Below, in pieces: positions 3,791 to 36,007 of a stretch of DNA of 37,145 bases. This DNA comes from Perkinsus chesapeaki ATCC PRA-425. Lineage: Eukaryota > Protista > Perkinsozoa. The notes under the pieces are model-generated. The model did not search any database, had not been told where the DNA came from, and saw nothing but the letters and a program-made list of their open reading frames with translations. Position numbers and translations under genes: made by a program. Location of the stretch: assembly GCA_013115145.1 (NCBI GenBank), contig JAAPAO010000350.1, positions 1-37,145 on the forward strand, read 5' to 3'. How positions within the stretch are numbered: the first letter of the stretch is position 1; the number at the start of each line of letters is the position of its first letter.

Positions 3791-3811
3791 GTCACGACTC
3801 GTGACTCAGAG
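3791..3811. repeat. 22-nt-type inverted-triplication scar of 8-mer GTCACGAG
   Basis: gtcacga-ctcgtgac-tcagag; 1-nt deletion in the right copy. Confidence 0.65.
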
Positions 3812-4323
3812 GTGAGATAAAGCATGCATACTCCAGGTAATCCCCTCTCACCGAGTTATCTCATCGACAGTCAAGCCTATATCATCCATCAGCTCATCAA
3901 TTCTATCATGACACTCTGCCACGGCGTGGATAATCTGACAGATCAAGGTTGAGCACAGAAATCCACCAGATCTCGGAAATAGGAATTGGCTGTAAACGCG
4001 GAACATCCTGAATGTGTCAGTAGTACTGAAACGTCCAAGTTGTTCAACTTTCTACTCTTGGCCGATTTAGTTTTTTTTTTCTACTTAATCGACTAAGTCG
4101 TAGTCAGGGTTCAAGAACGTTAAATATCTGATACATGATCTCGAGGCTCTGATTATAAGCACAGAAGGTGTCAATAATAAAATCACTCCCAGCAGCCGAA
4201 GGAAGAGGCACCGCCAAGTGCCAAACAAGTTTGACATATGACCTTCGAACGAATATCAGTATTTTTTTCTTTTATGGCAGAACAATACAGAGTAGTTTAA
4301 CGAGAATCCGACAGAGACGAATT

Positions 4324-7300
4324 CTAGCACTAGGTGCCCGCGCCATCGATGGAGCAGGAACCGAAAGCTATACCTGTTCATTATTCTCTTTCCCTTCTAT
4401 CAACAACTCTCTTGCCCGTTGAGTCTCAGCCTGCCACTCGAGGCATGTCTCGATCATTTTCTGCACTAATGTTGATTTCTTCTGCGCTGCTTCAGTGTCG
4501 CCTCCTCCAGTTGCTGAAATACACACTTTGTCCAATTTGGAAAATCCAAAAAATAAAGCTATCGAAAATCACAAAGGATATTTTCAAAGTCGTCTTTTAT
4601 GAGCTACGTTATAACTCCCAGTAATCCCTCAACGCCTATCTGTCCTCAAACAGTAGTGGCAGTTTCCACCCTGTGTCTCGGGTCAGCCCCCCCCTTATAT
4701 TTAATGTTAATAATTCTGGATATCCCGCTGGGTAATAATTCATCTCTTTAAGCTCTCGGAGCAGAAGCCCTGACGACTTCACAGACCTTACCAAGCAATG
4801 GGCGAGCAACTTCATTCAAGTCCTTCCTAACGCTTTCTACTTCATCCCCAAGACGCTCTAGATTCGATACCCTGAAAAGGAGATTAAGCCAACAACTTCT
4901 CAACCTACCTCACCTTTCCTGTATGCCTCGTACTTCCCCAGCGACCTCTGTGATGGCGTCCTGGGAAGATTGCTGAGCTTGCTGTGGATTGCCTCCAGAC
5001 GGCGATAGGTTCTCAAGCCCATCCAGTCTCGCTGCGATACTATCGCATCTGAGAGATACACTTTGAGGAACGCCCAACGGGAATCGAGAGGATCAAGGAG
5101 GACGGCTAATCGATCAAGAAAAAGTCGGAGAGATTTTGTAATTTTCCGTGTTTTTTTGTAATATTCAGTAAATTGAACCCGGAAATAATCGTGAAATCTC
5201 GCAAAATTTTCGCCCATTTTTGCCCTGATGGTGTTAAGCATTCCGTAAGAAGTTTCACAACCCGAGGAACCCAACAAAGCTAGTCGGCAGCTGTTTTGCA
5301 TTTCACCTTAAAGTTCATCACATTACATTCTACTGTAACATTCAATGCATTTACCACAAAAGTCTCAGCGAATCCAGATGATACTTAACTCCCGGAAGAA
5401 TTGCTTTGTTGCCTACCTCTTCCCAAGGCGTTCCCGATCCTCAGCACTATCATCCAGCAGTTGTCGAAGCCGCTTCGCTCCGCTGTGTAAATTATCAATT
5501 TTCTCCTCGGTATTATTTGCCAATTCCTCTATCGCTCCACGCAGGTTCATTGTCGCTTCCTGCAGTTTGCGCTCGAGCTCTTGTGAGATTTCGCTGGCAT
5601 CATTTTGCCGCGAGGACTTCTGACCACAAAGAAGCATAAACTTCTGACCTTTGAGATCACAGACCCCCGCCGATCGCCGTCTGGGACGTATTTGCAATAT
5701 TATTAATATTATCAGTGCAAAGAGCAGCAACAGCAACCAAGAGCATATCCCCCCTGTCCAGGCACAGAAAAGCACCAAAACCAAATGTTCCAACAAGCCC
5801 GTGAGAACTACTCACGCGCGCCACCAAATTCAGCACAGAGGGCACGACGTCAATTTCCTCCAACTCCGAGCTTGATGACCGATAAACTGACTAATAATAT
5901 TTCTTACCTCATCAAAAGCATCATTAATTTCCTTCATTTCCACCTTAACCCTCCTCAACATCCCCTCCACTTGCTCCCTATCCGCCTTCTCCTCAATCTC
6001 CTTCATTAATCCCTGCTCTATATTTTCCATTCTCTCCGCCACACTGCCATTAAGGCGTGTTTGGCCTTCCTCAAGTGCGGTGATTCTGTCATCTGTTCGA
6101 TTGACAGCCTCCGATTGCGCTATCAGTCCGGAGTCCAGCTCCTCCGCGACTTTAGAAAGCGCTGCGTTGATAGCTAACACAGAAGGAGGACTATTTCGAA
6201 ATCTCGGTCGTGAAAAGTGAGGTTCCAACATATTTCGGAATGGAAGAAGATACTACTAAAGTAGTAAAGCCAGTAGCAGCAGCGGAAGCCATGAAATAGT
6301 ATTCCATCAATTACAGTGATGAAGAATAAATATTCTATACCTCTGCCAGCAGCTGACCCACACCCCCTTAACGCCCTAAACACCCGAATTTCGGGTTTCG
6401 GGTTTTCGGGTTTCGCTTGTCTCCCCTGCCTCCTCCCTTTACTACAATTATCAGTTTCAGCCAGTTGCCCTTCTAATATCTCCATTCTTTTCCAACACCC
6501 TCCCATCCGACTGTCAACTTCGTCGACACGCTCCTCCAACCTGATCGAACCAACAAGTCCAAATACCAATGTTCATGCTTGTGAACTCTCCAAGCCAATA
6601 ACGATACAGATCTGCGATCCGCAATGCCCACCACGTTGCATCGTTAAACCAACACTACCGCCGTAGTACTCATCAATAGACTAAGTAAGTACAAGTGAGA
6701 GCCTGTAGCGAGCAGTTTGCCAGTTCTGAGCATACTCGAACATTTTCCCCGAATCGCTTGCACAATCCACATCCATACAGATTCCCCACCGCTCAGACGG
6801 CCTTACCTATTAATTTCACTCAAAGCCTTCTCTTCCATCTCATCTCTAACTCTATTAATTTGGACCTTGAAATGTCCGCATTAGCCTTGACCAAAGAACA
6901 CGATATGATTACGTGTGACGCGGCAGTCGCCTTATCGATTCTCCGGGCTAGTTCGTCACCGCTTTCTGCTAGGACGCCCAACACCTACAGTAACAGAAGC
7001 TGTCTAAAAGATAAGCAAAGACAATAAATCTAAAACGGCGTTTCATTAGCGCACAAAAATGGATTCGCGATCGATTTACTCATAAAGACTTTATCATCGG
7101 GACGCGACTATTCGGAAATCCACCAGACGGGGGGAGGCGGAGAACTTCATCAGAAAACATCAAGTAGAATTGGAAAATTCAAGTGCGCTTATTAATGCAT
7201 CGGAGAGTCCTTGTAAGGATGAGAGTTTGAGGAAGTATGGTAGAAATCATTGTGAGGGTACTACTTCTCGCTCACGCAGAAATATGTTCCCGATTGAACC

Positions 7301-9383
7301 GCACTATGAAATTAGTTAATTTTTCATCAAGTAAAATTCGTCGAATAGAGCGATATAAGTGTAAGTTCCCCTTACTACCTTCGCCTGTGAACCCGCCAGC
7401 TCTCCCCTTAGCTGCTGAACATGCCCTTGCAATCGATCATGTACATCCCCCAACGCCCTCGACACTTCATCGGACCTAACTCAACCATCTAGAGAATTCC
7501 TAATTTCCACAGGCCGATGACCTCCGCGCCGAAACCTGCGTAAATTCCAGACGAACCTCCTCCACCATCGACCGCGCTTCTTCCCTCTCGCACATGGATT
7601 CCTTCAAGCTCGCAATTGTGTCATCAAACCTCTCTTGCACCTTTGAAAAAAGCTGCCATAGAAAAGCCTCAGTAATTTACCTTTTCCGCCGCTTCCCGAA
7701 CATGTCCTTTCATTGCCTTCTCAACCTCATCTTGGACCATTTTTAGTGTCACGTCAGCTTCCAATCGATTAAACCTAAACCGCAGGTCACCCTCATGCCG
7801 CTCGAACCGGACATGTTCCTCCTCGCCAATTGCAGAGATTTCCTCGTTCCAAAATATTTCCTCACAAGTTCGTCTATTTAGATTCGATCGCCCCCCCCCA
7901 AATTCTACACTCTAAGCGTAACCCACCAAAACTGCTTCCCCTAGTTGTTATTACATTTCCTCTTTCCATTGATTCTCATACGCTTCTTTGACATGCTCTC
8001 CAACCATAGAGATTACTTCAGCGCGAAGCCTCGTTTTAACCTAAGGACACTGCTGTTAACATTTCCCAGACACATACGTATAAATTGTCCAATTATTGCT
8101 GTCTATTAAGACGTAATCATTCCTGCTCGTTTCTGAATATGGATTCGAAGGCTGTCCCACGACTCCATCTTCATAAAGGACAACATAGCGCGAAACAGTG
8201 ATTGTAGATAGCAGCCAGGAGATTTCGTAAAATACCATACTTCCTCAAAATCGTCTGCTAATCCCTTTATAGCAGCCTTCGTTAACTTTGACAGGAGTTC
8301 TTCATTCATCTGTTTCTCATATTCCCCTTCAAAGTACTCTCGGCCTGACAAAGAGAAGCCTGAATTCAGACAAAGCATTATAGACTTCGAAAATGGCCAT
8401 CAAATGTAATTAAACGGAACCTTCCTCATCATCACTAATGGAAGAATTTTGCCGAGTGCCGAGTTTTACATCTTCTGTGGGCTATCTCGAATGAACACTA
8501 CGCAAATTCTAGAGTAAACATACGGAAAAGATACTCCAATCCGACCTGAGATGTATCCTTGTTAGAGCCACACCCGTAAGATTCTACATAACCGGATCTA
8601 ACCTCACGAACTTTATCTAAACCTCAAGAGAAGTGAACTCGGACGCGACAACAACTGAGTTAGAAGGGACCTAGGTAAATAAACTTACACTGAACAGCGG
8701 CGGCCTCCATAAAATGTTTCGTGGCTTCGAAAGCTCGATCTCTGTTTTCGTTGACAGCGATATTGCTGAGCTTTCTTACTTCCTCTAGGCAACTGATCAG
8801 AAAACTTCAATTTATCCGGTGTGGGGAAACAATTGTGAAGATTTTATTAGTCATTCCTTCTGGCATAAATCAGGCTCAGGATACCATATATGGGGATATC
8901 TGTTATCGGTACTGGTGCTAGTATTGGCCAAAGTACGGTATGAAGACATAGGTCGATTTATATCATCGAAAAGGCAGCAACCAGCACCCATTGAGACATT
9001 CCTTAATGGATAATCCATAAATTAGGAACGATCATGATCAGACCGAATTTCCCTTCCCGTTTACTCATCTTTAGCACGCTGGAATTCATCAGCCATCAGC
9101 GCCTGTGAATCCTTATGTCGTTCCAACATAGCTTTGAAGCACTTTAATTGTCTTTCTTGTTCCTATCAAAAATCCTATATAAGTCATCTTTACAAGCCTT
9201 GTCTTCTGTCATCTTTACCTCGCACAAGCACTGTACTTTAACTGTCATTCCCGACATTGCCGCACTAAGGAATTTCTCCAACTCTGGAGAAGCCAGTCTG
9301 AATTCGACGGCTAAGACCGGAATTCGAGAAGGCAGCTCACCTTGGGCCGATTCCATGTGAGATGTAGGCTCCAGCGGGAGCAA
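4324..9383 (-). CDS. Long multi-exon coiled-coil hypothetical protein (may be two genes; ends approximate)
   Basis: Series of heptad-rich exons separated by short GT-AG introns, e.g. EQERQLKCFKAMLERHKDSQ, VKTRLRAEVISMVGEHVKEAYENQWKE, RITALEEGQTRLNGSVAERMENIEQG, ITEVAGEVRGIQERVSNLERLGDEVESVRKDLNEVARP. Starts about 215 bp from thioredoxin, divergently. Not every junction could be phased. Confidence 0.6.
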
Positions 9384-9598: not shown

Positions 9599-10009
9599 AT
9601 GTCTGTTTCTCACGTGAACACCGTTGAAGCTCTTAACAAGGCATTTGCCGATGCTGGTGACAAGTTGGTGGTTGTGGATTACTTCGCAACTTGGTGCGGT
9701 CCCTGCATGATGATGAAACCCAAATTCGAGGCCATGGCCAAAGAATTCGACGGCAAGGTAAGATACCCCATTCCGATTCCAAAAGTATATTTTTATTTTC
9801 AGGCCATTTTCGTTAAGGTCGACGTTGATGAATCCGAGGAGGTTGCGGAGAAGGCTGGCATTCAGGTTCTTCCCACATTCATGCTTTACAAGGGAGGAAA
9901 CAAGGTAACCTCGAAAATATCTTTAGGCGGTTTATTATACTTGCAGGTTGCCGAGATGAGTGGTGCCAGCGATGCTAAGCTACGTGACTTGGTTAACGCC
10001 AACTGTTAA
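9599..10009 (+). CDS. TRX: Thioredoxin, 107 aa after splicing (introns 9758-9802 and 9905-9946)
   Basis: VVVDYFATWCGPC active site, FVKVDVDE and cis-Pro motif VLPTF; two GT-AG introns of 45 and 42 nt read through in the ORF track. Confidence 0.95.
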   Translation: MSVSHVNTVEALNKAFADAGDKLVVVDYFATWCGPCMMMKPKFEAMAKEFDGKVRYPIPIPKVYFYFQAIFVKVDVDESEEVAEKAGIQVLPTFMLYKGGNKVTSKISLGGLLYLQVAEMSGASDAKLRDLVNANC

Positions 10010-10791: not shown

Positions 10792-11562
10792 TTAACCATA
10801 CAAAGCTCCTTGCGCAAGGATAACATCACCATGGACCTTATCGGCCCCGTTGCTTTTCAAGCCATAACGGAAGATAACATTATGAAACCATCCATTATCA
10901 ATTTGGGAAAGCGTTACTTCCATCAACATATCCAGCTCCTCGCCATTGCTATTGACATTCTGCTCCCATTTCCAAAACAACACACTGTGACCCATGTTGC
11001 TTCCGATAACTACGCCGTGTTCAGTGTGCCACGGGATCTCGATTTTGGAAATACCGTTGCCCTCTATGTTTCCGAAAGCTAAGGCCGTGAACATTAAGTA
11101 CCCTTCAGAACCATCAGAAAAATTGGCACCCGTGAAGATTTCAGACCCTTTGAGGCCAGCTGGGTGCAGGCGCAGCGTGTAGCCACCAACTTCAAAGAGT
11201 AAGGTTGCGAATCCATAGCATCGAACTAGAACGTCCCGGATCGAACCATTTTCATACTTCATAAGGTCGAAGCGGATATTGAAGTTGCCCCAATGCTTGG
11301 GGTCATTTGTTTTCAACCAAATACCAGTGCCATTTGAGTTCTCATCAACGACGTTATAGATGCAGGTCTTTTCCCAGACCACAGGATCTTCCTGGTCAGC
11401 AGGACGGAAATATGAGGTTGTGGGGCCACCGTTACATCCTTTAGGGAAATCAGACGTCACCGTTAATTTGGCAGATACTGGAGAAAGGAGCATACCACAC
11501 ATGATAATACAGAAGCACATCATTGTAGAGCGAATTGGTAGTTTGCTTCTCTGAAGGGTCAT
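10792..11562 (-). CDS. Secreted protein of unknown function, family A copy 1 (intronless)
   Basis: Long open frame; hydrophobic signal MMCFCIIMCGMLLSPVSA; shares DFPxGCNGGP...VWEKTCIYNV...IDNGW motifs with copies 2 and 3. First ATG at 11562 (the ORF track start is a GTG); 11523 is an alternative start. Confidence 0.85.
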   Translation of the reverse strand: MTLQRSKLPIRSTMMCFCIIMCGMLLSPVSAKLTVTSDFPKGCNGGPTTSYFRPADQEDPVVWEKTCIYNVVDENSNGTGIWLKTNDPKHWGNFNIRFDLMKYENGSIRDVLVRCYGFATLLFEVGGYTLRLHPAGLKGSEIFTGANFSDGSEGYLMFTALAFGNIEGNGISKIEIPWHTEHGVVIGSNMGHSVLFWKWEQNVNSNGEELDMLMEVTLSQIDNGWFHNVIFRYGLKSNGADKVHGDVILAQGALYG

Positions 11563-11803
11563 TTGATATTTGGTGAACCTAACCACAGCTTATCAAAAAA
11601 CTTCGGCTTGAACTCTATATGAAAGCTTAAACGACGCGACGCCGATACCATCATCCACTCCGCCGGCGACGCCAAACTGAGACGCCCACACTTTTTGTGC
11701 TGTACATCCGTGATTGCAACCTGTCGGCCTTGGACCGACAGGTAAGGTTGGTAGTCTAAAGGTTTCAATATCCTATGATCAGATCATACAGAGTGGATGG
11801 CGG

Positions 11804-11825
11804 CCATAAGCCTCATGGCATAAGG
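11804..11825. repeat. Inverted-triplication scar of 8-mer CCATAAGG
   Basis: ccataag-cctcatgg-cataagg; 1 substitution. Confidence 0.7.
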
Positions 11826-13159
11826 CGCTAGACCTTCGACTTTTCTTCGACAACCAGACACCACGTGCGAGGAGATTAGATGGAGCTAAACGGCAACCTC
11901 CTGAAAGCTCTCTTCTAATCCCCGTGCGCAGTTCGTGCCTTTGAAAAACTTCAAGGCAGTCTGTGATATGTACTTAAGACCCCAAGGGAACAGCAAGCCA
12001 ACTTCTACAAGGGAGGCAGCAATCTCACAATACTTATTTGCACGCGTGGTGGCTCGCCTGTAGCCTTTTGGGAACTGCCAAATTCTTTGGGTCAGCTAAG
12101 CTGACAGCGCACTGGACACATATCTTGAAAGCTGACTCAGCTTCAAGCACCTCACACTATGGTACAGCACCTTTGGGCACCTCACATATGGTGGCATATA
12201 ACCAGCTGGCTTCCTGAAATGTTGGGCTCACATATGTTCACGGGAAAATTTATTTTCGAGCGAACTTTACGGAGCTGATTTCTATAACCGACAGACTGAG
12301 TTACGCGCAAGGTGCAGCCTTTGATATAGCTAAGCAGTCTTTCCAAGCCACAGTCCGACTTTTCTATCCGTGAAACAAGGCTGGTATTGAACTCAGCCCT
12401 TTAACGATCTGTGCCGACTGCTTCTAAGTGTGTTCATTGAGAAGCAAGTGCCTTTATCGACAAGCCCTCTTGTGCTAATTGTATAACAATAATTGTTCCC
12501 AATTATTCCATTTGTACGTAAAAAACGCCTCCCCTTTAAAGATGGCCACCTCACCGCAAAACTAAGCGATGAAGCGAAAAAGAGGAGGTTTACTCGGAGG
12601 TTATGATATCAAGTAAGATGATACGATTTTCAATGAAAATAGTGTTTGAGTTGGTTCAATTTGATAAAGTGAGTTTATATCAATATCAACTCATAGTTTC
12701 ACTTAGCAGCAATTCTCATCAAAATTCTTTTGAGAAACATTTTCTCCTCGAGATCAAGTCTAAGCGCCAGCAAAGCTAGCAACTGATGACAATATGAGTT
12801 ACTCAATAACGCAATAGTGATACTTAGCTCAAGACTTAGCCAGGTATTATATTCTTGGTTCGTTTGTTCAGTTATGTATATACCGTGAAACAAGCAGAGC
12901 TAGAGCACAATTGTATGAAGCAGCATGTGAGAGTTTCACACTGTTAAACAATTGTACACGAAACGCGCATGTACGAACTGCAAGTTTATGAACCGCACTG
13001 ACAGCTACTCCCAGCTTTTAGGCATTGTCGTGGCATGTTTCGAGGTTCATGTTCTTAGTGGTAAAATTGAGTTGGGTAAAAGTTGAGCAAAGAATGAATT
13101 TGCATATCGGTTCGATCGCAACTGTGGAGAATAAATCTCATTGTAAATAGAAAAATAGA

Positions 13160-13386
13160 TAATAAACTAACCTCTTTGATGAGCCTGTTCAGATCAGCCT
13201 CCTTCTCCCGAGCTGACTTCTAGAAGAGCTGCCAGCACACAATAATTCAGCACGCATGCGCAACTCCTTACTTCGGGAAAAGGCTAGGCTCACCCTGAGC
13301 CTCAGGGCCTGAGCGCCGCTGCCTTGGGGAACAAGGCAGCCTGTGGTCCTGTCCGTCTCAGCGCCCTTTTTGATTTGGTCTCCCGT
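13160..13386 (-). pseudogene. Truncated copy of the gene at 19139-19797
   Basis: Homologous first two exons (...EKEADLNRLIKE), but the start codon is ACG (13384-13386) instead of ATG, there are internal deletions, and the downstream exons are absent. Confidence 0.7.
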
Positions 13387-14534
13387 GGAGGGTTGTAGAA
13401 TGGAGGAAGAGTCAGTGCGAGCTTGACGGGGTTTTGGCTCGATACCCTAGCGAAAAAACTCAACCAATGAGTCCCTGCCCGAGGCGGTATCGGGATACAA
13501 GCATATGGTCGCCTACATATGTTGACGAGAAAAAGAAATTTCAGGAAATCTTACAAAAGTTTCGTCGATTTTATGTCCCAGGCTGGGAGTCCCAGCAAGA
13601 GAGGGTCTATTTTTTGTATAGAAACCCCGAAGAAAAGGAATATCTATCAGAGGGTTGCCTGAGCCAACTTGCCTCAAGCACCACCGCTAACATTGTTAGC
13701 CTACAACAAAGGAGGATTGGCAGGTATTTCACCACTGAGCTGAGAACGACCAAAACTTTTGGTCCAAAAGTCCGCGGAGTTTTGCTAGGAAACGGTGGGC
13801 TGAAATCTTTGACAATCGCAAGATTAATGATATACATTCATTTAAATTTAATCAATTGCTCCCGTAACAATCATAACTAACACGTGGTAACTTCAGTTTT
13901 GGAAGAAGAAATACAAGGTAAATGTAAGATAGTAACAAATGACGGAAGCGGTAAAACAACTTGTCAGTAGCCCACCTTTTAAAGGTGACCTTTATAAAGG
14001 ATCGATTCAAGTAACAATAACCGACAATAGTATCTAGTCGCCAATCTCACCATAGCAATCTGATAAAGATTGGCAGAAACAGAAATGACGTCTACCGAAA
14101 GGTCGATTATATACTTGTTAACTGCTGCTGAGTATAATTGTCAAAAAGATATCTATCAGCACATTTTACTGTAGATTTTATTGAGTTGTAATTATTAATT
14201 ACTAATTAATTCTGACGCTTAATACTGCCTGGGGGAGTTCCACACGAATCGTCGAGCCTCGCCTGTTGCGTGATCTGAACAGCATCGAATTGAATTTATC
14301 TTTAGTAAGAAGCCAGGGATACATCAGTGACAAAAGACATACATATTTCCACGGATAAAACTCTGACCTTGTCTGAATGGATAGAACGGCAGATAGTTGG
14401 GAGAGCGGACCTCTGACCAAAAGTCCACTAGATTGGTCAGTTGCTGGTGATGTATTTTGGGCACGATTGCTGAGAAGACTAGTGTTAGTTAGCCATAATG
14501 TTGCTGCCAATTGGGATTCCCAAATTGGGAATAG

Positions 14535-14595
14535 GACCGACATGGGCCTCCTTGATGTCATAACTTATGTGAGATCAAGGAGGCCCATGTCGGTC
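14535..14595. repeat. 61-nt hairpin with a perfect 22-bp stem
   Basis: gaccgacatgggcctccttgat (14535-14556) is the exact reverse complement of 14574-14595; the 17-nt loop contains cataa-c-ttatg. Confidence 0.9.
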
Positions 14596-14609
14596 ATATT
14601 GAGCCATAA

Positions 14610-14631
14610 GGAACTAATAGTTCCGAACTAT
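14610..14631. repeat. Perfect inverted-triplication scar of 8-mer GGAACTAT
   Basis: ggaacta-atagttcc-gaactat. Confidence 0.9.
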
Positions 14632-14819
14632 AGGAAGTAACTTCCACAACTCAACATCTGGGTATATTGACATTATAATCCTATCTACTCGACAATCATT
14701 CATTTTTTATTCGGCTGAGTGAAATAACTTCATTGCTAAAAGATTGCCGACAGCGGGCTGATATCGTCGAAGACTACCCTTGAGCAATCAGTAAGAATAA
14801 AAAGAAAATACGCGAAGGG

Positions 14820-14841
14820 CCATGAAGTTCATGGCATGAAC
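14820..14841. repeat. Perfect inverted-triplication scar of 8-mer CCATGAAC
   Basis: ccatgaa-gttcatgg-catgaac; the other arm has a single gctcatgg at 17960-17967. Confidence 0.92.
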
Positions 14842-14845
14842 GGCG

Positions 14846-15682
14846 CTAACCATACAAAGTTCCTTCCGCGATGGTAACGTCCAGATGGAAATCACGGGCC
14901 GTTTCATTATTTAGATTTTCACCGTGATAAAGGAGGGTAACTCGGTTGTACCATCCGTTATCAACTTCCTTAAAGTTTACTGTCATGGCGACATTGAGCT
15001 TGGAGACATTAGTGGGCGATCGACTCCAATCCCAACGCAGTGTGCTTTTATCCATTTTGCTCAGGATAGCCCAACCTTCTTGGCCTACCCATGGGATCCC
15101 GAGGTCGGTAATACCGTTGCCCACTATGTATCCAGTAGCAGTTGCCCGAAACTTCAAGAAACCAGCAGGTCCAGTAGGAAAAGTAGCACCAGTAAAGGTC
15201 TCCATCCCAGCTATGCCAGCGGGGTTAAAGTGCAGCTTGTAGCCATCAGCCTCGAAGAGTAAGTGAGCCCATCCCGTACATGTAACCCTAGCATCTCTGA
15301 GTGTACCGTTATCATACTTCAGAAGTTCGAAGCGAAGATCAAAGGTGCCATACCGACCGGGAAAGTTCGTCTTCAATAGAATGCCAGTTCCATTTACGTT
15401 TTCACCAGCAACGTTATAGATGCATGTTTTCTCCCAGACCACAGGTAACTGTAAGGTGGCAGGCCCACCGTTACACCCTTGAGGGAAATCAGTAGTCACC
15501 GTCGGCTTTCCAGATACTGGGACCAGAAGAGCACCGCAAATAATAAGACAGAAGGCCTTAGAGGACCGGATTAACAGGTTGATTCCCTGAGTAGATAAGG
15601 TGCCACGACTAGCACATTCTCCTGACTCTTGAACAAACCGGGTGCTAGCGGTCTTTGTAGTAGCGCGACTAGCAGGAGGCAT
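14846..15682 (-). CDS. Secreted protein of unknown function, family A copy 2 (278 aa)
   Basis: Intronless ORF, recessed hydrophobic segment AFCLIICGALLVPVSG, N-glycosylation sequons, 37 aa differences from copy 3. Confidence 0.88.
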   Translation of the reverse strand: MPPASRATTKTASTRFVQESGECASRGTLSTQGINLLIRSSKAFCLIICGALLVPVSGKPTVTTDFPQGCNGGPATLQLPVVWEKTCIYNVAGENVNGTGILLKTNFPGRYGTFDLRFELLKYDNGTLRDARVTCTGWAHLLFEADGYKLHFNPAGIAGMETFTGATFPTGPAGFLKFRATATGYIVGNGITDLGIPWVGQEGWAILSKMDKSTLRWDWSRSPTNVSKLNVAMTVNFKEVDNGWYNRVTLLYHGENLNNETARDFHLDVTIAEGTLYG

Positions 15683-16261: not shown

Positions 16262-16283
16262 CGTGAGACTCTCACGGTAAGAG
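16262..16283. repeat. Inverted-triplication scar of 8-mer CGTGAGAG
   Basis: cgtgaga-ctctcacg-gtaagag; 1 substitution. Confidence 0.75.
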
Positions 16284-16843: not shown

Positions 16844-16934
16844 AAAAACAAACATCAATCTGTGCAAGTGTACGACGATAAAGTCTATGAATCGTTATAC
16901 ACCCGCTTGAATAGACAGCGTGGCGCACGGAGCG

Positions 16935-18159: not shown

Positions 18160-18162
18160 CCT

Positions 18163-24202: not shown

Positions 24203-24449
24203 TATGGCAACAATTTCCCAGAGCCTCTATCCTTCCTCCCCATCTCGCTTTCACAGCTTTAATCCTTCTTGTCCTCCAGTGCGAGGAACCCTCCCGCTTG
24301 AGGCAGGAAGGTGAATTTTGGCGCAAGAAGATGCCGACGGCTATGCAGCCCTCTCCGGTGTTTCACAACAAATAGATTTTTGAAAATGTGCGTGCACGAG
24401 GACACGGTGCAAAAAAGCACATTCAAATCGATCAACCGTTTCGTACCGT

Positions 24450-24817
24450 TCACATGTAGTTGCTAAAGTAAGCAATGCTCTCTTCGAATAAACGATAATT
24501 CCCCTGTTGCACTATGGAGCAAGACGACCCACTTCAACACAAAATCTGTCCCCTCTCTCTCACCTTTTCCCTCATCTGATCGCCATAAGTCCCGCCAGAC
24601 GAAGCCTTCCGCCTCACCTCACTCATCAGCGCTTCTGTCTCTTCTCGCTCCCCATCTCGAATACCTTCACCAATTCTTATCAAAGCTTTGACAAGACGTG
24701 ATGAGTTCCCCAGCAGCAAGCACTACCCGAGCCAGCCCGCGGCCCTCCTGGACGCAGCTGCGCCTCCAGATGGTCTAAGGACGCCTTCGCTCGCTGATAC
24801 ACGGTTCCGCTAGACAT
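24450..24817 (-). CDS. Small three-exon hypothetical protein (about 90 aa)
   Basis: Spliced model MSSGTVYQRAKASLDHLEAQLRPGGPRAGS / ALIRIGEGIRDGEREETEALMSEVRRKASSGGTYGDQMREK / GNYRLFEESIAYFSNYM*. Confidence 0.55.
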
Positions 24818-25559: not shown

Positions 25560-26366
25560 TCATATCAGCTCTCCCGCGACTTGTACGAATTCGTTCACTG
25601 CATCATTAGCAACATTCGGATCATGCTTCACCTCGCTCATAAACTTGATCTTCATTTTCGACAAACTCTTCGCTACCTCCGATTTTCGTGGCGCAGTGAC
25701 TTGACCAATGATCCTCGTCACAATTCTGCGCATTCGCGTCTCTGTCTCCTCCACAACCGTAACCGACTCCTCCTTGTGCTCCGAAAACTCCGGGACCCCC
25801 CTATTTCTCGCCAGCCCTATAGCACGATCGACCTCGACCAGCGACTCAGTGCTGCAATCGCTGATATGCACCACCGGAATTCGGCGCTCCCAACCGATCT
25901 GGCCGTTTTTTCCGCCATCTCCGGCCTCAGGAACTTCAAGTACCTCGCTCATCCCCGTAATGACGCCCGGAGGCACCACGTAGCTCCTCTCGGCATTCCT
26001 TTTCAAGCACTCTTCAAGAGGGCAATTCATAAACACACAGCACACACCAGCACCGACTGACCAGGCGGCCTTGCAAACGCTTTTACGCATCGATCTGAGG
26101 AACTGATTATCATCCATAACCACCGTAATGCCCTCCGATCGCCGCAAAACCAAAGCCATTTCCTGGAGGGCAACTCGCCGCCCCTCCCTCCAGAGACCAG
26201 GATCGAACTCCTGCTCCCCCCATCCATTCTCTCGGAGTAGCCGCCGACCAATAGCGTCGTATTCGATAAGGTAAGTGTCGGCTCGTTGTGATTTCAGTTT
26301 CTCAGACAAAGTTGATTTGCCGGAAGCGGGCAGGCCACACAGGATCACAACAACATTGCTTGGCAT
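25560..26366 (-). CDS. PSTK: O-phosphoseryl-tRNA(Sec) kinase (L-seryl-tRNA(Sec) kinase), intronless
   Basis: N-terminal P-loop LCGLPASGKST, LIEYD, the PSTK-type DDNQFLRSMR motif, CPLEECLKRN lid and a helical C-terminal domain. Confidence 0.85.
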   Translation of the reverse strand: MPSNVVVILCGLPASGKSTLSEKLKSQRADTYLIEYDAIGRRLLRENGWGEQEFDPGLWREGRRVALQEMALVLRRSEGITVVMDDNQFLRSMRKSVCKAAWSVGAGVCCVFMNCPLEECLKRNAERSYVVPPGVITGMSEVLEVPEAGDGGKNGQIGWERRIPVVHISDCSTESLVEVDRAIGLARNRGVPEFSEHKEESVTVVEETETRMRRIVTRIIGQVTAPRKSEVAKSLSKMKIKFMSEVKHDPNVANDAVNEFVQVAGELI

Positions 26367-26887
26367 GGAAAAAACGACTCAACTGCAGAGCATTTTGTAT
26401 AATGAATTATGAGAGTACTTTTTGTCAGCAGGCCGACGGAAAGACTTTCAGATTGGCAGTTACGCGTGCATCTCGAAGACGTGGCGCCGTTAAAGAGCAG
26501 CCGATACCTCCTACCTGGGCAACACAACTAATTCACAAATTCGGACACCTTCAGACTCTCATGTCAACTCAACCACCATCACTCCCCATCCCTCATTCCA
26601 CTAGATCTCTCAGCTACTCGACGCTTGCCCAGTATTCGGGGGCCGTAGAACCTGCAAAAATAATCTTAATACATTCTTAATCGCATTTTCCCCTTTCTGA
26701 ATACTTTTTCAATTCAACACTTTTACTAATAATGGCTTTATTACTTCACCAGTAGTTGCGAAGCGTATACTCGAACTTTACTAACACTTCGTACGCACGC
26801 GTGCGTACAAATTACCAGCAGCTCGATGATCTAAAAGGCCTATGATCACATGCCATACACCATACGATAGGTACTCCTACTCCTCGG

Positions 26888-26909
26888 GATACCATTGGTA
26901 TCATACCAA
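26888..26909. repeat. Perfect inverted-triplication scar of 8-mer GATACCAA
   Basis: gatacca-ttggtatc-ataccaa. Confidence 0.92.
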
Positions 26910-28695
26910 AGGAAAATATACGAAAAGTAGGTTCAGATTTGATCTTCAAGGTTTGCGGGCAAACAAATATTTTCCCGCCGAAAAATGACAGGCCTGGGGA
27001 TTGAACTTGCGACCATCTAAACTCGATCACTGATGCGGATCGTGTCAGCGATTAATCTTATTTTCGGATATCCCCCGGAGCCCAACAGACCTGCATGCAT
27101 CAACCAGCTTCCTCTCTGAAGGACTATTAATCGACACTCGACGTTCTCCCGTCAGACCTGTCAAAACAACAACATGCACATATTCCCAAATGAGCAGTCC
27201 AACCTGATGCGCTCTCCACGAAGCTCGTTAACTTCTTCGCTGAGGCGGGCCTGAATAAGACACGCGAAAATTTCCGCAGGTTTTGATCACCACTGCTAAT
27301 TGATTATTATAATTAAATTATCTATACTAGTAATGTTAAGTCTGCATTGTTGACCAATATTAAATCCTATATCTACTCATTATAATCTTCCCTATTCCAT
27401 ATCACCACTACCACTAACAGTATTATCCAACTCACAAGCATAGTGACCTCAAGTTCCGACACTCGGCTTATGGTAAACTACAAACAATTATGCTTCGGAA
27501 AATCACACCCTCTCAGACTTCCCGGCAACGACTTCTCATTGAGATCCTCCCAGTTAAAACGCATCTCCCCCCCTCAATCTTCACTAACATGCCCCCCTGA
27601 TACACGGCAAATCTTTCCCTTCAACAATTACTCCGATGCTCCATTTGATTGCCTATGTGCCATCAAGCTCGTCCCATCCAACTGACTTCCGTATCGTTCT
27701 GGATAGTACGTAACCGATTTCCGTGCTGGCTTCCTTGCCGGACCTGCCATGTCCTTCCACTCTAACCTTGCTAGAGTACGAATCCCACCTATTGTTCGTC
27801 TAAATGAAGTCGTGCATGTGACCTTTTCGGTAACCGGATTCAGCGAGGAGGTGAGCGGCCTGATACAGGTCACAATCGGCCCAGGAGACCACTTATCCAC
27901 ATATAGATAATAGTTTAACATAACAAGCTTGCTGGACCGCTCCAGCAGCTAAGCCCACTGCCTTACTCCTATACTGGGACTCGCCTGCTGCCTGGTCGAA
28001 GGCGAAGTGCCGCACTATAAAAGTATCAGTACAAATGAGTAAGCCTATATATAATATACAAATAGCATCAACTCGTTGCAAAAGTAAGATATGCACAATA
28101 ACAAGAATCCCATTTGTGGTCGGATACAATTCCAAGATCCCAGAGCGGTCGGCCAGAACTTATACTCAATGAGAGCTTTTCATGGCAACTTCCGCACCCG
28201 CCATGGCGTCAATAAGATTCATCAACAACATACAGCTTGTTACAGAAATGCTTGCTTTAATATCTATCGTTATAAAAAGAACTTAAGATTATCGACCAAA
28301 CTACCCAACAATATTCCACCGCCCCCAAACTCACTTATGCGTTCTAAAATAATTCTCCACAGATTCTCCCACCGAAGATGACGACGCAGAACTGTCCTTT
28401 GAGCGAATCGATGTGGAGGCACTGCTGTCGCCAGAGACGCTCGGTACCGAGGAGAGCATTGAATGATAAGATATAATAGCTGCAATGAACTCTACTATAC
28501 CATCTACTCCACAAATTTTACCCAAAATTTTTTTCCGAACTCCACGTAACTTTCGGAGATTTTACATATTTCCCGTGCGACGTTTAACCGCACAATAAGT
28601 CATCTCGAGCTATCCGTCAACACGACAATACTTGGCCATAGCCACTCCCCAAATGGGTTACCAAGATTCATGCAACTACATGAATAAAAAGCAAG

Positions 28696-31118
28696 TCATA
28701 AAGACCATTGCGGCCGCTGGTATCTAGGCGGCGGTGGTGATCCTACTGATCTACGAATACTACTACGAGTCGCTATCGATGGCAATGTGAGGTTGGATTG
28801 GGGACGGAGAATTGTGCTCCTACTCGGGAGCGAGCTGGAAATACCTAAAAATGAAACATCCAACCGCGATGGATGATAAGACTATAAACTCTCCATCAAA
28901 AAGCAAACCAATAATTCATATGCATTTATTATTCGACTACACCGCAAATTCACCCGGGACCAAACGCCAACTGATCAACTTCCAAAAAGGCCCACGGGAG
29001 CTCCGCATATCGATCCAGCGGACCCCCCTCCCCCCAAATATGACTTCTTTCCATCCAGGAATCACAACAAGTCGATGTTGAAGTCCACAGCCCTCCTCCT
29101 CGACTGCTCCTTGACTTAACCGGAATTCTGGCTCGAGCCACAATTTTATGATTGCACATCTAAAACAAGCCAGTTAGAACAAGCGATGACAACCTCTCCG
29201 AGGTGAAAGTGAGAGCAAAACAGAGAGCTCAATACTCGATTGAAATAGATCACAATAACCTTCGTAGTAAACATAGCATCTTGGGCAGGACAGATGTCAT
29301 CACTAGACGCCTTCTCTTCGGGGTAAGAATTCAGAAAGCTCGACGGCCCTTCCATGGCCATTGACATGAACTACTAAAAGCTTCCACGGCCCTACCAGAA
29401 CCACTTCATATAAATTCGCCTGTCTTCCCTTTAGAAAAGAACAATGAAATTTCCCTATCCTGGAAAAGGATTTTATTTTCCCTTGAAATTTTTGCCCTAT
29501 CCAGCATCTCTACCTGGCACACTTGCCCCGGCGGGCCCTCCCCGCCAATCTGAAGACGCTTCAGTAAAGCCAGGCGCTCCCGCTGCAGTTTCTCTATCAA
29601 TTCCTGCTGCTCCACTATCATTCGTATCGGAGATTCTGCAAAAAATACAGCGGAGCGACGCAGTTCTGACGAACTTACCAACAGCCGAAGCATCCTCGTA
29701 GCGGTCAAGCCGCATCTTCGTCACACTCAACTGGGACTCGGCAGACTGCAAATCTTTGCGCAATACTTCAACCTCGACCTGTACAAAAGATACGTCTTAA
29801 AAGTGGAATCTCATCACCTTGGAAGATTCCAGCTCGACACCGAGAGCTTCTTTCATACCAATTTCTCTAGAAATCTCCACGCCAAGCCGATCATCTGAAA
29901 TAGGGACAAATTAAGTTGTTGGAGAAGATATAATAAGTTGCCTACTTTCGGATTGGACTTCACTTCTAATCAGTCTTGTTTCTTCCAACTCAGCGGCAGT
30001 GGACTCGTACTGGGTACTCAAATCTCGGATCTGAGAGAAAGTTGGTATCAGATACGCAGTGGAATTAGCAGACAAGCGATAATTTGCCGAGACCGCCGAA
30101 GACGCTCCAACTTCAATTTCTTCAAGGAATTTTCTTAAAGCACCTACCGTAAAAGTTTATCATCGCCGAAATCGAGGAAGAACGTTCAGAGAAGATGTTC
30201 TCAACCGGAGGAAAGATATTAATATTTCCCACAGAATTATCGCTGACTTAGGTTTGATGTCCAGTTTTAGGATAGACCGCGCGCCACGAAATGTCAACTT
30301 CACACCACCTTCTCCAGCAGTTCCTGCCGCTCCTGAATGAATTTAGAATCGTCTTTGGCAGCAATCTCTCGCTCATGCTTTCTCGAGTCGACCTAAGATA
30401 CGTCCTGCTGTCCTCGCCGCAACCTCAACCTCCGCTACCCAAACCCTCCATCGAGCTAAGATTCGCCCAAGTAAGCCCTCCTCCTCTCTGGCCGCTAATG
30501 CCTCAACGAAACCAAGTCGCATATATCGCACTCGACCATGCAACTGAAATTCCAACGACAATAGCTCTCTCAGTAAGAGCTGGATTGCCTACTTCTCTGA
30601 GTTCGGCAATCTTCCCGTCAAACTGAATGTTCACTCTCATTAGGTCATCTTCAACAAGGGCCACCTAAGATAATCACTCCGAACTCAACTCCCCAAGCCA
30701 CGCCAAGAGCAGCGCATTTCAAAGCCCGGTCCCATAAATACCAGTGTTATACGTCCTAAGTCTCCCCAACAGCTATGCAGCGAAGCCCAACCGTTCCTTC
30801 CTCATCATTTAAGCGTTCTGGTACTATAATTTAACCCAGCTCTTAAAAAAAAACTGAATTGCTAACTTCTACTTATTATTAACATGGCCTTAAAGCTTCA
30901 AGTCGCTGAGAACCTACCTTATATCTCCCTTCGATACAAGCACCTGTCCACAATCGCCAGGCCAAAAAGTTGCCCCATAGAGTCTGCTCCTGCAAGTCTC
31001 GATGATACCGCTCCGCCGTTTCACGAACTGCCCGTCGAAGTAGCCTTTTTTGCTCATTAGCTCTATTTTCACCTACCACAAGACATGGTCCGGGAGACAT
31101 AATTATCACGCGGGACAC
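28696..31118 (-). CDS. Multi-exon helical/coiled-coil protein with Sfi1-like Trp motifs (may be more than one gene)
   Basis: TLWGNFLAWR and LLGRILARWR match the LLxxx[FL]xxW[KR] core of centrin-binding Sfi1 repeats; coiled-coil exons at 29450-29800; S/R/P-rich last exon ending RYQRPQWSL*. Confidence 0.45.
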
Positions 31119-31179
31119 AGGTGAAATGAGGTTCTAGTTGGCCTTTAGCTGTTGAGTTGAAGCGTCTTTTGTTAACGAA

Positions 31180-32157
31180 GTGCAGAAGGCAGGTTGCAGA
31201 GGGCAAATCATCTTCCCTACAGAGATTTCCGGCTACAGTTCTTTTCCCTCCTACCGCGGTTTACCTCTACTTGACTCTTCCTGTAAAGGGCATATAATAA
31301 ACAAGTTCAAACGGAAAGATGGTATGAAATTTGATCGAACTACTATATACGGAGAAGTTGACTTGCTGGAAATCAATAAGAGATGGGAAATACTTATAAA
31401 GTAGTTTACCTTCCATCAGAAGAGTGTTGAATTGGCATTTGTGCTGACGTAGCACCGCAAGGAAAACCTCTTCAAGATTGCAAAGAGTCATCTTGTACGT
31501 CTCGCGTATCATATTTTCGGTTTCAACCTGAGAATCTTTATTGACATCAGGAGCACGCTTAACCTTCTGAAGGTTACCGCGGTGGAGAGAGCGGATTGAA
31601 GCGCTACGATCTCCTGGAACATTGATTCCACTCTGTTGCGTGCTTGCTGGGCCTGAGAGTATCTTAAGCTTAACCGCGCAAGATACGAAACATGCTACAA
31701 TGGTGGCTTACAGAGATCAATCCATGAGCTTCATCTACAAAGTCAGGTTTCACCTCTCGCTTTTGACTCCCCAGGTACCTGTGGTCGCCAAGAGTATCTT
31801 TTGTTTGAGCGTGCAAGATACGAAGTTGGTCAACTTCCTACCATCCGCACAACTGGCTCATCTTGGCGACATAGCCCGCAATCTCTGCTGTTCTACCACG
31901 GCTCTCCAAGAAGGCAACCCGAAGATACTCATCGCCTGCTGATCGATAATCCGGCATCTCAAAACACGCGGCAAAAGATTCGTAGTGGACTATGGTCGTT
32001 GAGGAACTTCGAGAAAGTGCAAGATTGGCGAGATCTGAAACTGCTTAAAAAAGAGAGTGGAATTGTACAAGGCAGCCTTGTCAAGGTTGTCTGTCAGGGT
32101 CTCACAGTGAGAACAATCTATATATTGTGGCTCGAGGGTGATCCTCCGTCGAATTAG
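31180..32157 (+). pseudogene. Degenerate intronless reading frame with four internal stops and no frameshift
   Basis: One frame holds for about 325 codons with TAG, TAG, TGA, TGA; internal repeat EYLKLNRARYE / EYLLFERARYE. Confidence 0.5.
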
Positions 32158-32691
32158 CACTACACCCCACAGTGTAGGGCCTACACTGCCTTTCATCATC
32201 CTGGACCATTCTTGTCTTGCTCTCTCTCTATTGCACTCTCTACGCAGTTCCCTCCACCAAATTATCTGTCCTACTTAGTATTCATTAAAGTTTAATAATT
32301 AAAGTTTACCTCGTCATTCACTTCCTCACTGAACTTGACGCGATCTGTTGTCTCAAGTAGTCGATCTCGTAAGGTGTGTTTTTGCGCGGGGTTGACATCG
32401 TCTTCTTTCGCGTTTTGGGTGCCCAGAAAATTCGTATTGAACGATTGAACAGTTCAATGCAAATCTTAATCGGCGAATTATTTACATCGATCTTTTAACT
32501 GGAATTACGGCCGATCGTACGTAATGGCATGTGGTAGTTTGGGAGTAAACTCGAGTTGATAGATTAACTATAAAGTTAGTATAAACAAAACAGAACAGAG
32601 TGAGTTAGATGAGAAAATCAGTAATCTCTATACTGCAAACTTGTCAGTAGAAATAACAGAAAGAATGACTTGCCAACTGGCTGTTCACTTC

Positions 32692-33114
32692 TTATATGCT
32701 TGGGCAGGCATAGGGTTCACCAGTACAGTTAGAATCAGTAGGAGCAAAACATAGGGAACCATCAGACTTGTTAATAATACCAAAACAGACTGGAGGATTC
32801 TGCCACGATTTACAGTATGATCCCCATTTAGAGTTTTTACAACTGTCTAAGTTATCGCAGGTATCTTCACAAGTAGGTGATACTATTGGACATGACACCG
32901 GCTCCAAAACAGAGTCATCACAGGAAGAGTCTTCCGGTTGAAAGCAATAACCGTCATCTTTATGGTATAACCCAAAACAGACACCATTTCCTTTACAATA
33001 AGAACCATACTTTGAGTTCTTACAAGAAGGTGTTTCATCACATAAATCTTGACAATGGTCAGCCGAGGCAAGGGAGACTGACGATAGTAGAATTGCTGTG
33101 AGGAGAAAATTCAT
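32692..33114 (-). CDS. Secreted cysteine-rich protein, two 8-Cys repeats, copy 1
   Basis: Signal peptide MNFLLTAILLSSVSLASA; repeats CxxxCxxxxxCxxSK[YW]GSYCK...VCFG...CFxP...C...EPxxC; 16 Cys. Confidence 0.92.
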   Translation of the reverse strand: MNFLLTAILLSSVSLASADHCQDLCDETPSCKNSKYGSYCKGNGVCFGLYHKDDGYCFQPEDSSCDDSVLEPVSCPIVSPTCEDTCDNLDSCKNSKWGSYCKSWQNPPVCFGIINKSDGSLCFAPTDSNCTGEPYACPSI

Positions 33115-33367
33115 TTGGGGAATGGAATAATTTAAACCTGAAAAACTTGTTATAAGATAATATCGATATATCTCAAGTACACTCTTATCGACTGATATGA
33201 TGTAATGAATTTGGACAATGAGTTCTACACCATTTGTGTGTGGATCCTGTTACACATGGCTCCACAGTAGACATCAAGTATATGTCTCCGTGTAATGTAT
33301 GATAACACAGTGCGTATTAGCTTTCGAGCGTTTCTTCAGTTACTTCTTCTCTTCTCACAATTGATGT

Positions 33368-33389
33368 ATGTTAACTTAACATTGTTAAG
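33368..33389. repeat. Perfect inverted-triplication scar of 8-mer ATGTTAAG
   Basis: atgttaa-cttaacat-tgttaag. Confidence 0.9.
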
Positions 33390-34089: not shown

Positions 34090-35003
34090 CTAATCGGTAT
34101 CCCGAGAATAGTATAGGGCAAATAGATATTCATCACCTTGCTCTGAAAAGACGAATGTATTCAAATAACCCAGTCAATTGATGATGGGTTCGTCTTCCAA
34201 CTCACCCATAACATTTATGAAGTGGAACGTCTCGTAGAAAGCAATCGCGCCTTCTTCACGTTTTTTAACGAACAGAGCCAGAGCGAGAATGTCTGATGTT
34301 TTCTTTCCCTGAAATGGAGTCGAGTTTGCATTACGATACATAAAACCTCAACACAAAGGCACTTACGCATTCTATACTGTATTCGACGAGTTTTGTACCA
34401 ATCTTATTTCTACGATAATCCTTGCTAACTACCACCTGAACAGCAATGAACACTTTTTGATCGCTGGATTGCACATGGCCATACAGAACCGAAACAAACT
34501 ACTCAATGCGATGGGACATCGTGATCGGAGTATATAATAAACTATACTGTACCCAACAGCTCACATGATTTATAAATCCAAAACGTCCTTTCTTCTTTGG
34601 GTCAGACCTAACAGAAACGAAAAGTGGCTTGTAACTCATCATTCGTCATCCACTCTGCGGCTCAGTAGAGAAGACATGATATCCCCACTCACATGCGTGA
34701 CCTTACAGCTGCCTCACTCCCTTTAGACAGCCTGTCTGGTATGGTCATCTCAATGAACCCAACGACTGTCTAAAAGCATTTATAGGAAAGAGAATCCTCG
34801 GTCTGAAGGCTCGTCAATCCTCTTCTTACATTAGCGCCCATATTCAGATCAACTGCTACATAGCATGGGATTCCCGGCCTATCCTGGCAGTTCGCCTCTA
34901 GAGGGAACCTGCCGAACGTATCTCCTTCCTGGTAGTTACGATAAGCTATGTTTTCAGCTGAGGAGAGTGTGAAGGTGAAGAAGACAAGGCACAGATGATT
35001 CAT
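34090..35003 (-). CDS. Signal-peptide-bearing GNAT N-acetyltransferase, 172 aa, six exons (34830-35003, 34693-34769, 34565-34607, 34367-34435, 34206-34308, 34090-34142)
   Basis: All five introns are GT-AG and in phase. Product contains IAYRNYQEGD (beta1), CYVAVD/TVVGFIE, FGFINHVVVSKDYRRNKIGTKLV (motif A) and ALFVKKREEGAIAFYETFHF (motif B); N-terminus MNHLCLVFFTFTLSSA. Confidence 0.85.
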
Positions 35004-35029: not shown

Positions 35030-35051
35030 GTCGTAGCCTACAACTTGTAGG
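35030..35051. repeat. Inverted-triplication scar of 8-mer GTTGTAGG
   Basis: gtcgtag-cctacaac-ttgtagg; 1 substitution. Confidence 0.75.
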
Positions 35052-35607
35052 GCAACATTCACCCGTTTATCACCAATTCACATTTATGTCGATATCATTC
35101 GGCCACAGAGCTTTTGCGACGCCTGTTCCGTTCGAACGAGGCAGCGAGGCAGGCAGCGCTTTCTCGCAGCGGGAACCTCCTTTGTACTTTTGTGCATGCG
35201 TGCAACTGTGGAGACGGTTTATTGCGTCACGCTGTAAGGCGAGCAGCATTGATAATTTAATTGAACAAGTTGAAGTTGTAGTAAGACATTGTTAGTGGTT
35301 TGCTGTGACTTTGACACATCTACTATTGACTTATCTTGTGAGAACGGTTACGTTTTCAGGAACCTGAATTCTGTACACCCGGGCGTCCTGGATACTATCA
35401 CAATTCAGCTTCTACTAGGGGACCACTGTCCATGATAGTCTAAGATGTGTGCCAATGGAGATATTATTGGAATTTGGCAAATCCTGCTCCACATTTGCGC
35501 CCAGTAGGACTCCGGGTCTCACGTCAGTGGCCTGGCCATGGTCGGCTCAACGCTTCAGACTGGTGCATGCGTGCTGACCCAATTCATCATAACTTCAAGT
35601 TTTACTC

Positions 35608-35825: not shown

Positions 35826-35948
35826 CTGATTCGGCCCATCGTGTCCATGGGCCGTTGAACTTGGACCTATTTTATATAAGAAATAACGTGAGAATGGATC
35901 GCTATAGGGTTCCACCATCAAATGTCAGCCTCGTTTAGATATGCTCCA

Positions 35949-35970
35949 TTTCGAGACTCGAAATTCGAGT
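35949..35970. repeat. Perfect inverted-triplication scar of 8-mer TTTCGAGT
   Basis: tttcgag-actcgaaa-ttcgagt. Confidence 0.92.
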
Positions 35971-35985
35971 TTCTTCTTGTACCGT

Positions 35986-36007
35986 CTTATGGGCCACAAG
36001 TTGTGGC
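35986..36007. repeat. Inverted-triplication scar of 8-mer CTTGTGGC
   Basis: cttatgg-gccacaag-ttgtggc; 1 substitution; a further direct copy cttgtggc at 36010-36017. Confidence 0.8.

Follow-up and report, generated by a model that had tools for sequence, protein, structure and literature searches.

Genes and scars of the locus

The window analysed here is an entire contig of the protist Perkinsus chesapeaki (JAAPAO010000350.1, 37,145 bases, assembly GCA_013115145.1), along which a short, stereotyped structure recurs that we call a scar and that probably goes back to transposons. A scar consists of 22 bases arranged as X[1-7] + revcomp(X) + X[2-8], where X can be any 8-mer ABCDEFGH and revcomp(X) is its reverse complement.

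On the minus strand, the annotated gene ranges of the window reach up to 9447 and then span 10792-15682 (537-aa product), 19139-21433, 21545-22870, 23489-24817, 25560-26366 (KTI12-like), 26579-31957 and 34090-35003 (acetyltransferase); those on the plus strand lie at 9599-10009 (thioredoxin) and 17119-17955. The model at 10792-15682 joins two paralogous frames, 10792-11586 and 14846-15682, across a 3.2-kb spacer with ten scars, and it looks like a false fusion of two genes.

Sorted by substitutions, the window holds ten perfect scars, 14 with one change and six with two, i.e. 30 with at most two changes. Perfect copies are found at 13749-13770 (X=ACCAAAAG), 13973-13994 (CACCTTTA), 14188-14209 (GTAATTAA), 14610-14631 (GGAACTAT), 14820-14841 (CCATGAAC, directly past a stop codon), 18163-18184 (GTAGCACG), 20411-20432 (a duplicate of the scar at 13973), 26888-26909 (GATACCAA, within the range of a 622-aa gene), 33368-33389 (ATGTTAAG) and 35949-35970 (TTTCGAGT). 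One change separates from the formula the scars at 5026-5047 (GTATCGCA), 11804-11825 (CCATAAGG), 13293-13314 (CCCTGAGG), 13575-13596, 13654-13675 (GTTGCCTC), 14510-14531, 15697-15718 (GTTTAATC, directly upstream of a start codon), 16262-16283 (CGTGAGAG), 18052-18073 (CAATGAAG), 19522-19543 (CATTTGCC), 32067-32088 (ACAAGGCT), 32165-32186 (CCCTACAC), 35030-35051 (GTTGTAGG) and 35986-36007 (CTTGTGGC). Two changes are seen at 4529-4550 (TTTCCAAA), 18138-18159 (ACTAGCCA, three bases from the perfect scar at 18163), 18866-18887 (GTTATAAC), 27301-27322 (TAATTATC), 30116-30137 (ATTTCTTG) and 32283-32304 (TATTAAAC). A further scar, at 13686-13707 (GCTAACAA), has decayed by an indel. Two loci with three changes are candidates: 3791-3812, possibly a decayed scar that singly is not separable from background, and 16935-16956, possibly an old one.

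An earlier note on this DNA had listed 14 positions for the motif, and all of them carry it. The six that it called perfect are indeed perfect, whereas only six of the eight to which it ascribed one or two changes have that few (11804, 16262, 18052, 18138, 35030 and 35986), those at 3791 and 16935 having three. It had missed four perfect copies (13749, 13973, 14188 and, as the duplicate of 13973, 20411) as well as about a dozen with one or two changes.

A signal confined to one unit length

The chance expectation of 1.4e-4 that had been put forward for a perfect copy is arithmetically correct. First-order (Markov) resampled sequence leads one to expect 0, 0 and 0.25 copies at 0, 1 and 2 changes, respectively, and dinucleotide shuffles of the window give 0 to 0.05 copies. 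The excess persists at three changes (18 observed vs 3.4 expected) and at four (41 vs 27).

When the unit length is varied over k = 3-13, the window gives a signal at k = 8 only and nothing at k = 7 or k = 9-13, a sharp peak of the kind that the earlier note had proposed to look for. In a table of the spacings of 6-mer, inverted 6-mer and 6-mer, the combination (7,7) alone stands out, with 14 cases, and direct 6-mer repeats in the window peak at a spacing of 14 only. The (8,8) spacing to be expected of a 24-base scar, i.e. one without the one-base offset, has zero cases in the same table. Simple tandem 8+8 footprints, sought as a class in the window, gave none, nor is there a peak at a direct-repeat spacing of 8.

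The local 8-mer accounts for every one of a scar's 22 bases, without any foreign base, and the bases at scar positions 8 and 15 are complementary to those at 8-mer positions 8 and 1. Every scar has a different sequence, and scans with Rfam and for tRNAs gave no match. Since unchanged scars of the same shape also occur in short-read contigs from two samples (five DNA runs), the 22-base pattern is real and not an artefact of assembly.

Scarred and empty versions of the same site

The state of a site before it was scarred is preserved in its relatives, namely internal duplications of the window and a paralogous region on another P. chesapeaki contig, L001. In pairwise and three-way alignments, the paralogue shows one 8-mer and a gap of 13-14 bases at 13575, 13654, 13686, 14610, 14820, 15697 and 18052. 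Thus, copy B of the duplicated segment has a single GTCCCAGC and a 14-base gap at 13575, one near-copy of the 8-mer at 13654 and a single GCTAATAA at 13686. L001 has a single 8-mer at 14610, as does the other arm of the palindrome at 14723-18065 for the scars at 14820 and 18052, and the site at 15697 is empty in both that arm and L001. Copy B also lacks all 22 bases of the perfect scar at 13749. At that site, the paralogue (20165-20211) is 8 bases shorter than an empty site should be, and one short-read contig of run X3 departs from the window exactly at 13749.

Other scars are common to several copies. The scar at 13973 recurs in its 99%-identical duplicate at 20411, and the one at 13293 is present in copy B in a heavily decayed form. 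The scar at 14510 is found again at L001:11201, there with two changes, and is hence older than that duplication; the candidate at 16935 is partly common to three paralogues. L001 also holds a scar at L001:10863 that arose independently, 9 bases away from the 14820 site, and whose place is empty in both window arms; at L001:12007, it has a nested scar.

Alleles tell the same story in a second species, Perkinsus olseni. Its locus was reached via orthologues of an intronless 2OG-oxygenase gene that adjoins one of the P. chesapeaki paralogues, and the sample comprises seven haplotype or isolate contigs from five assemblies, all of one locus and 115 kb in total. In them, 58 distinct scars differ from the formula by two changes or fewer, again at k = 8 only. 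When the 70 bases on either side of each scar were mapped onto the remaining P. olseni contigs, at least 13 sites proved to have the 22-base scar in one haplotype and exactly the single 8-mer in others. Site TGTATAAT, for instance, carries the scar in two contigs and is empty in four others, and the same kind of polymorphism is found at CCATTTCC, AGGTACGC, GGCCGAGT, CCTACGAC, GCGCTGTC, CGCCGCCT, CTTACCCG, CAGCTCCC, GTCGGAGG and GGAGAGCA. As the unscarred paralogues and alleles have the 8-mer just once, every scar amounts to a gain of exactly 14 bases at one 8-mer. In other words, a single ABCDEFGH has been turned, repeatedly and in two Perkinsus species, into ABCDEFG + h'g'f'e'd'c'b'a' + BCDEFGH.

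The change can also happen twice in one place. Site ATGGCACG is empty in two P. olseni contigs, carries the 22-base scar in a third and is 36 bases long in a fourth, where a second scar sits on an 8-mer spanning a junction of the first. With the nested scar of P. chesapeaki, this makes two such cases overall and a series of 8, 22 and 36 bases. One old P. olseni scar is common to six haplotypes, in which it has decayed differently.

A separate P. olseni site has three alleles (L008:13279, L006:15078-15169 and L011 at about 15120), none with an intact single 8-mer: one is a perfect scar with X=GGTCTAGC, another holds a filler of ~84 bases bounded by a 14-base direct repeat, and the third has a deletion of 4 bases. 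A single ancestral insertion may have been excised here and the break repaired in different ways, and the site hints at outcomes of excision other than the scar.

In the reads of P. chesapeaki (five DNA runs of two samples), none of the 18 scars with up to two changes that lie in two stretches has a 14-base indel; these runs are assembled contigs, which drop rare variants, and so they show only that the scarred form predominates. For an orthologue of the KTI12-like gene, the only contig obtained is 1.5 kb long; it has no scar and is uninformative.

Distribution, decay and target preference

Scars are ~3.6-fold denser between annotated genes (1.8/kb) than in gene ranges including introns (0.49/kb; p = 1e-6), as counted in the window, L001 and a further locus, L002, with the 10792-15682 model taken as two genes. 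Across all loci, 21.3 kb of intronless annotated coding sequence contain 0 scars against 18 expected, where part of the sequence is the same gene in several haplotypes and the true expectation is perhaps half of 18; the depletion in coding sequence that had been suggested for the window is thus borne out. Within gene ranges, the scar at 27301 has stops in two of three frames and only a 26-codon open frame in the third. The one at 19522 lies in a 215-codon open frame that may be exon or intron. Two RNA runs, consulted on whether scars fall in exons or introns, do not contain the gene concerned.

The distribution is also uneven. Of the 30 window scars, 17 fall between 10 and 20 kb; several scars lie within 25-100 bases of one another, and some touch start or stop codons. 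Such clusters, together with overlapping hits, fit local hopping.

Among scars with one or two changes in the window, L001 and L002, the odd base can affect each of the three copies and each of the eight positions. Six bases occur three times within a scar, so that the majority reveals the direction of later mutations. Transitions account for 30 of the 42 changes inferred in this way (71%). The scars are undergoing ordinary neutral decay and not selection for pairing.

For the target logo, each scar and its reverse complement were treated alike. The 64 P. chesapeaki sites favour G/C at position 1 and T at 2 and 3; positions 4-5 show no preference, and 6-8 mirror 1-3. T at position 2 (by symmetry, A at 7) occurs in 55/128 cases (p = 4e-5), and the 58 P. 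olseni sites share this preference in weaker form (42/116, p = 0.02). The hAT element Hermes prefers nTnnnnAn (PMC10368747), and the Buster branch of hAT prefers nnnTAnnn (PMC3499496); a TA at positions 4-5 is not seen in the scar sites. Comparison with known hAT targets thus places the T2/A7 enrichment with Hermes and apart from Buster.

Duplications and other features of the window

The palindrome at 14723-18065 is a head-to-head inverted duplication of a 278-aa gene without known domain (14846-15682 on the minus strand, 17119-17955 on the plus strand). Its arms are 91% identical and include a 176-base identical run (15265-15440) within a near-identical block of ~300 bases, which suggests gene conversion. 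A third paralogue of the gene lies at L001:10001-10861. Relative to both window copies, its coding sequence has an in-frame 30-base insertion (L001:10169-10215) that combines a 9-base tandem repeat with an 11-base inverted repeat, a longer and different templated insertion from the 22-base scars.

At 222-970, a fold-back consists of two inverted 289-base arms (222-510 and 682-970) that are 97.6% identical and enclose a 171-base centre; it has no terminal 8-bp duplication. Two segments, 32660-33115 and 35189-35395, have a summed contig depth of ~10 to 15 times single copy, with diverged copies, and are multi-copy. The former is part of a Cys-rich gene family, and the latter (~190 bases) shows no inverted termini, clear duplication or Rfam match. 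Finally, comparison of 13209 with 19591-19625 reveals a 33-base segment that copy B shares with two more paralogous read contigs and that copy A lacks; it has neither a duplication nor inverted ends.

A probable hAT-type route to the scar

The best explanation, and a likely one, is that a cut-and-paste transposon with hAT-type chemistry inserted once at each scarred site and was excised again later, the 22 bases being the footprint that it left. Between the observed input and the observed output, both of them exact, we infer an insertion, hairpins, a distal cut and an annealing. The element would first insert and duplicate the 8-mer. Upon excision, the transposase would nick one base inside each flank, and the 3'-OH of the flank would attack the opposite strand, sealing both flanks as hairpins. 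The unpaired tip of such a hairpin would be complementary to the base that had stood next to the element, namely h' for the left flank and, on the bottom strand, A for the right one, giving the hairpin strands ABCDEFG-h'-g'...a' and h'...b'-A-B...H. The host would then cut the returning strand not at the tip, but at least 8 bases away from it, e.g. through an Mre11/CtIP-type incision in the strand with the prospective 5' end, leaving 3' tails that end in h'...a' and A...H. These two tails, complementary over exactly 8 bases, would anneal, after which flaps would be trimmed, gaps filled and nicks sealed. The product of this series is the observed 22 bases including both centre bases, whereas a hairpin without the offset would yield 24.

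The one-base offset has precedents. Hermes reportedly nicks one base into the flank, a result ascribed to Zhou et al. in 2004. In footprints of Ac/Ds, inverted additions have at their centre the complement of the element's neighbouring base, an effect of hairpins of the flank (PMC5873905), and the palindrome centres of the scars obey this published rule, being the complements of the bases that would adjoin the element.

All of the tests proposed in the earlier note that were run support excision of a hAT element. That note had gone further and described repair as dominated by microhomology. This part has to stay conditional because precise repair and deletions are invisible to a scan for scars, and the same blind spot applies to the fraction of excisions that end as scars.

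The missing element and other possible sources

Several observations weigh against a hAT origin. One concerns the transposon itself, which we infer from its traces. Scanned against Pfam, the 69 open frames of the window (at least 90 aa) include no transposase and match thioredoxin/OST3, KTI12/AAA and F-box only. A scan of the window for inverted termini flanked by bases matching at 7-8 of 8 positions found only artefacts of two large inverted repeats. Haplotype-specific insertions of 40-7000 bases in the 115 kb of P. olseni turned out to be either tandem copies of genes or insertions that lacked duplications and inverted termini, none of them flanked by an 8-bp duplication. No transposase family is among the Pfam hits of called genes in L001, L002 and the P. 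olseni loci; no open frame of at least 170 aa lies outside the called genes there, these frames having had no Pfam scan. Altogether, the search covered about 190 kb. Comparison of alleles, as the earlier note had suggested, and of paralogues did bring to light the empty single-8-mer state but no occupied one, all 13 polymorphic P. olseni sites being either scarred or empty. In addition, the target preference is weak and extends to T3/A6, the opening of hairpins at least 8 bases from the tip is an assumption, and a uniform footprint is unlike the products of hAT in plants, yeasts and human cells. As to the element, one that moves rather than multiplies could leave very many scars from few copies. 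The lack of occupied alleles is to be expected if the copies are few and frequently on the move, and is thus compatible with membership in hAT.

The same lack of a hAT element in the DNA examined leaves some room, albeit little, for another hairpin-forming superfamily with 8-bp duplications, be it Mutator-like or an undescribed relative in the hAT/MuDR/P/Kolobok/Dada group. Muta1 forms hairpins on its flanks and duplications of 8-9 bp (PMC5499845), and Perkinsus marinus is known to have Dada elements, which are distantly related to hAT (PMC3706591). Yet Mutator-like duplications vary within a family, from 8 to 10 (9-11) bp, Muta1 excision is precise in >90% of events and no stereotyped palindromic footprint has been reported for it (PMC5499845), whereas the scar unit is strictly 8, with no scars of k = 9 or k = 10 at 0-2 changes and nothing at 9-13. 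Dada elements make duplications of 6-7 bp and target tRNA genes (PMC3706591), and the T2/A7 preference matches Hermes instead. As for the P element, its footprints retain bases from the element's inverted termini. This does not fit the scars, whose bases all come from the local 8-mer.

Somewhat less likely still is a scenario with no resident transposon at all, in which a host nuclease, such as a domesticated hAT-like transposase, attacks 8-bp sites directly, or insertion and excision take place within one cell cycle, with repair of the break then yielding the scar. It would account for 0 occupied alleles at 13 polymorphic sites in up to seven haplotypes and for about 190 kb without an element, and domesticated hAT transposases that make hairpins do exist, Kat1 being one according to a passage of PMC10368747 that cites it. 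However, a staggered 8-bp cut that is filled and joined would give a tandem 16-base duplication rather than an inverted middle copy; the latter needs two full 8-mers, each sealed as a hairpin, and thus a duplication that already existed. Moreover, few mobile copies set against thousands of scars already predict that occupied alleles are rare.

Errors of replication or repair unrelated to transposons—fold-back, template switching or snap-back by polymerase theta—are very improbable as the source. Processes of this kind do make short inverted duplications, but such errors would give a continuum of lengths, and the scars are exactly 8 in unit, with a fixed 1-base offset, in ~120 independent cases from two species. 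Least credible of all is that the motif is an assembly artefact, given the short-read contigs of two independent samples and the differing decay of the old scar in six haplotypes, or a selected structure of two overlapping 7-bp hairpins, e.g. a protein-binding or termination signal, as the scars directly at start or stop codons (14820, 15697 and L001:10863) might suggest, for each scar is different, its presence varies between alleles and paralogues (the earlier note had named invariance as a counter-argument to excision) and decay hits single copies at all positions and breaks the pairing without compensation.

Relation to known excision footprints

The hAT excision footprints of Ac/Ds, Tam3, Hermes, TcBuster and Ascot-1 resemble the scars in having 8-bp duplications, flank hairpins, palindromic (P) nucleotides and, frequently, microhomology at the joint (PMC5873905, PMC3499496). 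They are very varied, however: in Candida albicans, 128 events with Ac/Ds fell into 28 types of footprint, and the palindrome arms seen in yeast range from 1 to 20 bases (PMC5873905). Excision of hAT in human cells produces small insertions or deletions (PMC3499496), and in rice mostly deletions or filler DNA (PMC4423477). In Perkinsus, only one product stands out, with both arms exactly 7 bases long, an overlap of 8 bases and a density of ~1-2/kb in intergenic DNA.

Two further systems invite comparison. At V(D)J coding joints, the hairpin made by RAG is opened off-centre by Artemis:DNA-PKcs, such that inverted flank bases enter the joint; such P additions usually amount to a few bases, with trimming and the addition of untemplated bases afterwards. 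Off-centre opening of a hairpin-sealed flank is thus common to both, but in Perkinsus the whole 8-base duplication is inverted and the ends meet by an 8-base overlap. With mPing, the likeness is that the target duplication supplies the microhomology that steers repair after excision (PMC4561436). Excision of mPing restores the site precisely, whereas in Perkinsus the microhomology would lie between folded-back strands and 14 bases are gained. The similarity to Muta1 is limited to its flank hairpins and the fact that its duplications can be 8 bp long, the length being variable (PMC5499845).

The literature searched contains no description of the 22-base scar, nor of hAT in Perkinsus. The chemistry, then, is known; what is new is that one stereotyped footprint recurs on the scale of the genome, with nested and polymorphic cases, in two species of Perkinsus.

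Implications for Perkinsus

Excision footprints are normally too varied to be recognised without knowing where the element was, and past cut-and-paste activity is thus invisible in genomes. Here, each scar can be recognised from nothing but its sequence, in which the original site is preserved. Transposition can hence be counted and dated, insertion preferences can be mapped (intergenic, at gene ends, clustered) and strains genotyped by presence or absence, and the three internal copies offer a read-out of the neutral mutation spectrum. On a practical note, 14-base scar indels confuse gene models.

A bolder reading, which we put forward tentatively and regard as possible rather than probable, is that Perkinsus mends hairpin-sealed breaks in a near-deterministic fashion, by a distal cut and annealing of 8-base tails, and that few, highly mobile hAT copies, or a domesticated hAT-like nuclease without a resident element, wrote tens of thousands of scars that identify themselves and can be dated. 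A possible reason is that opening at the tip (Artemis/Pso2-type) and classical end joining are weak or absent. If this reading is true, the scars would amount to a genome-wide count of transposition with a neutral mutation spectrum built in. They point to an unusual, uniform repair of hairpin breaks in alveolates that stand beside the dinoflagellates and apicomplexans.

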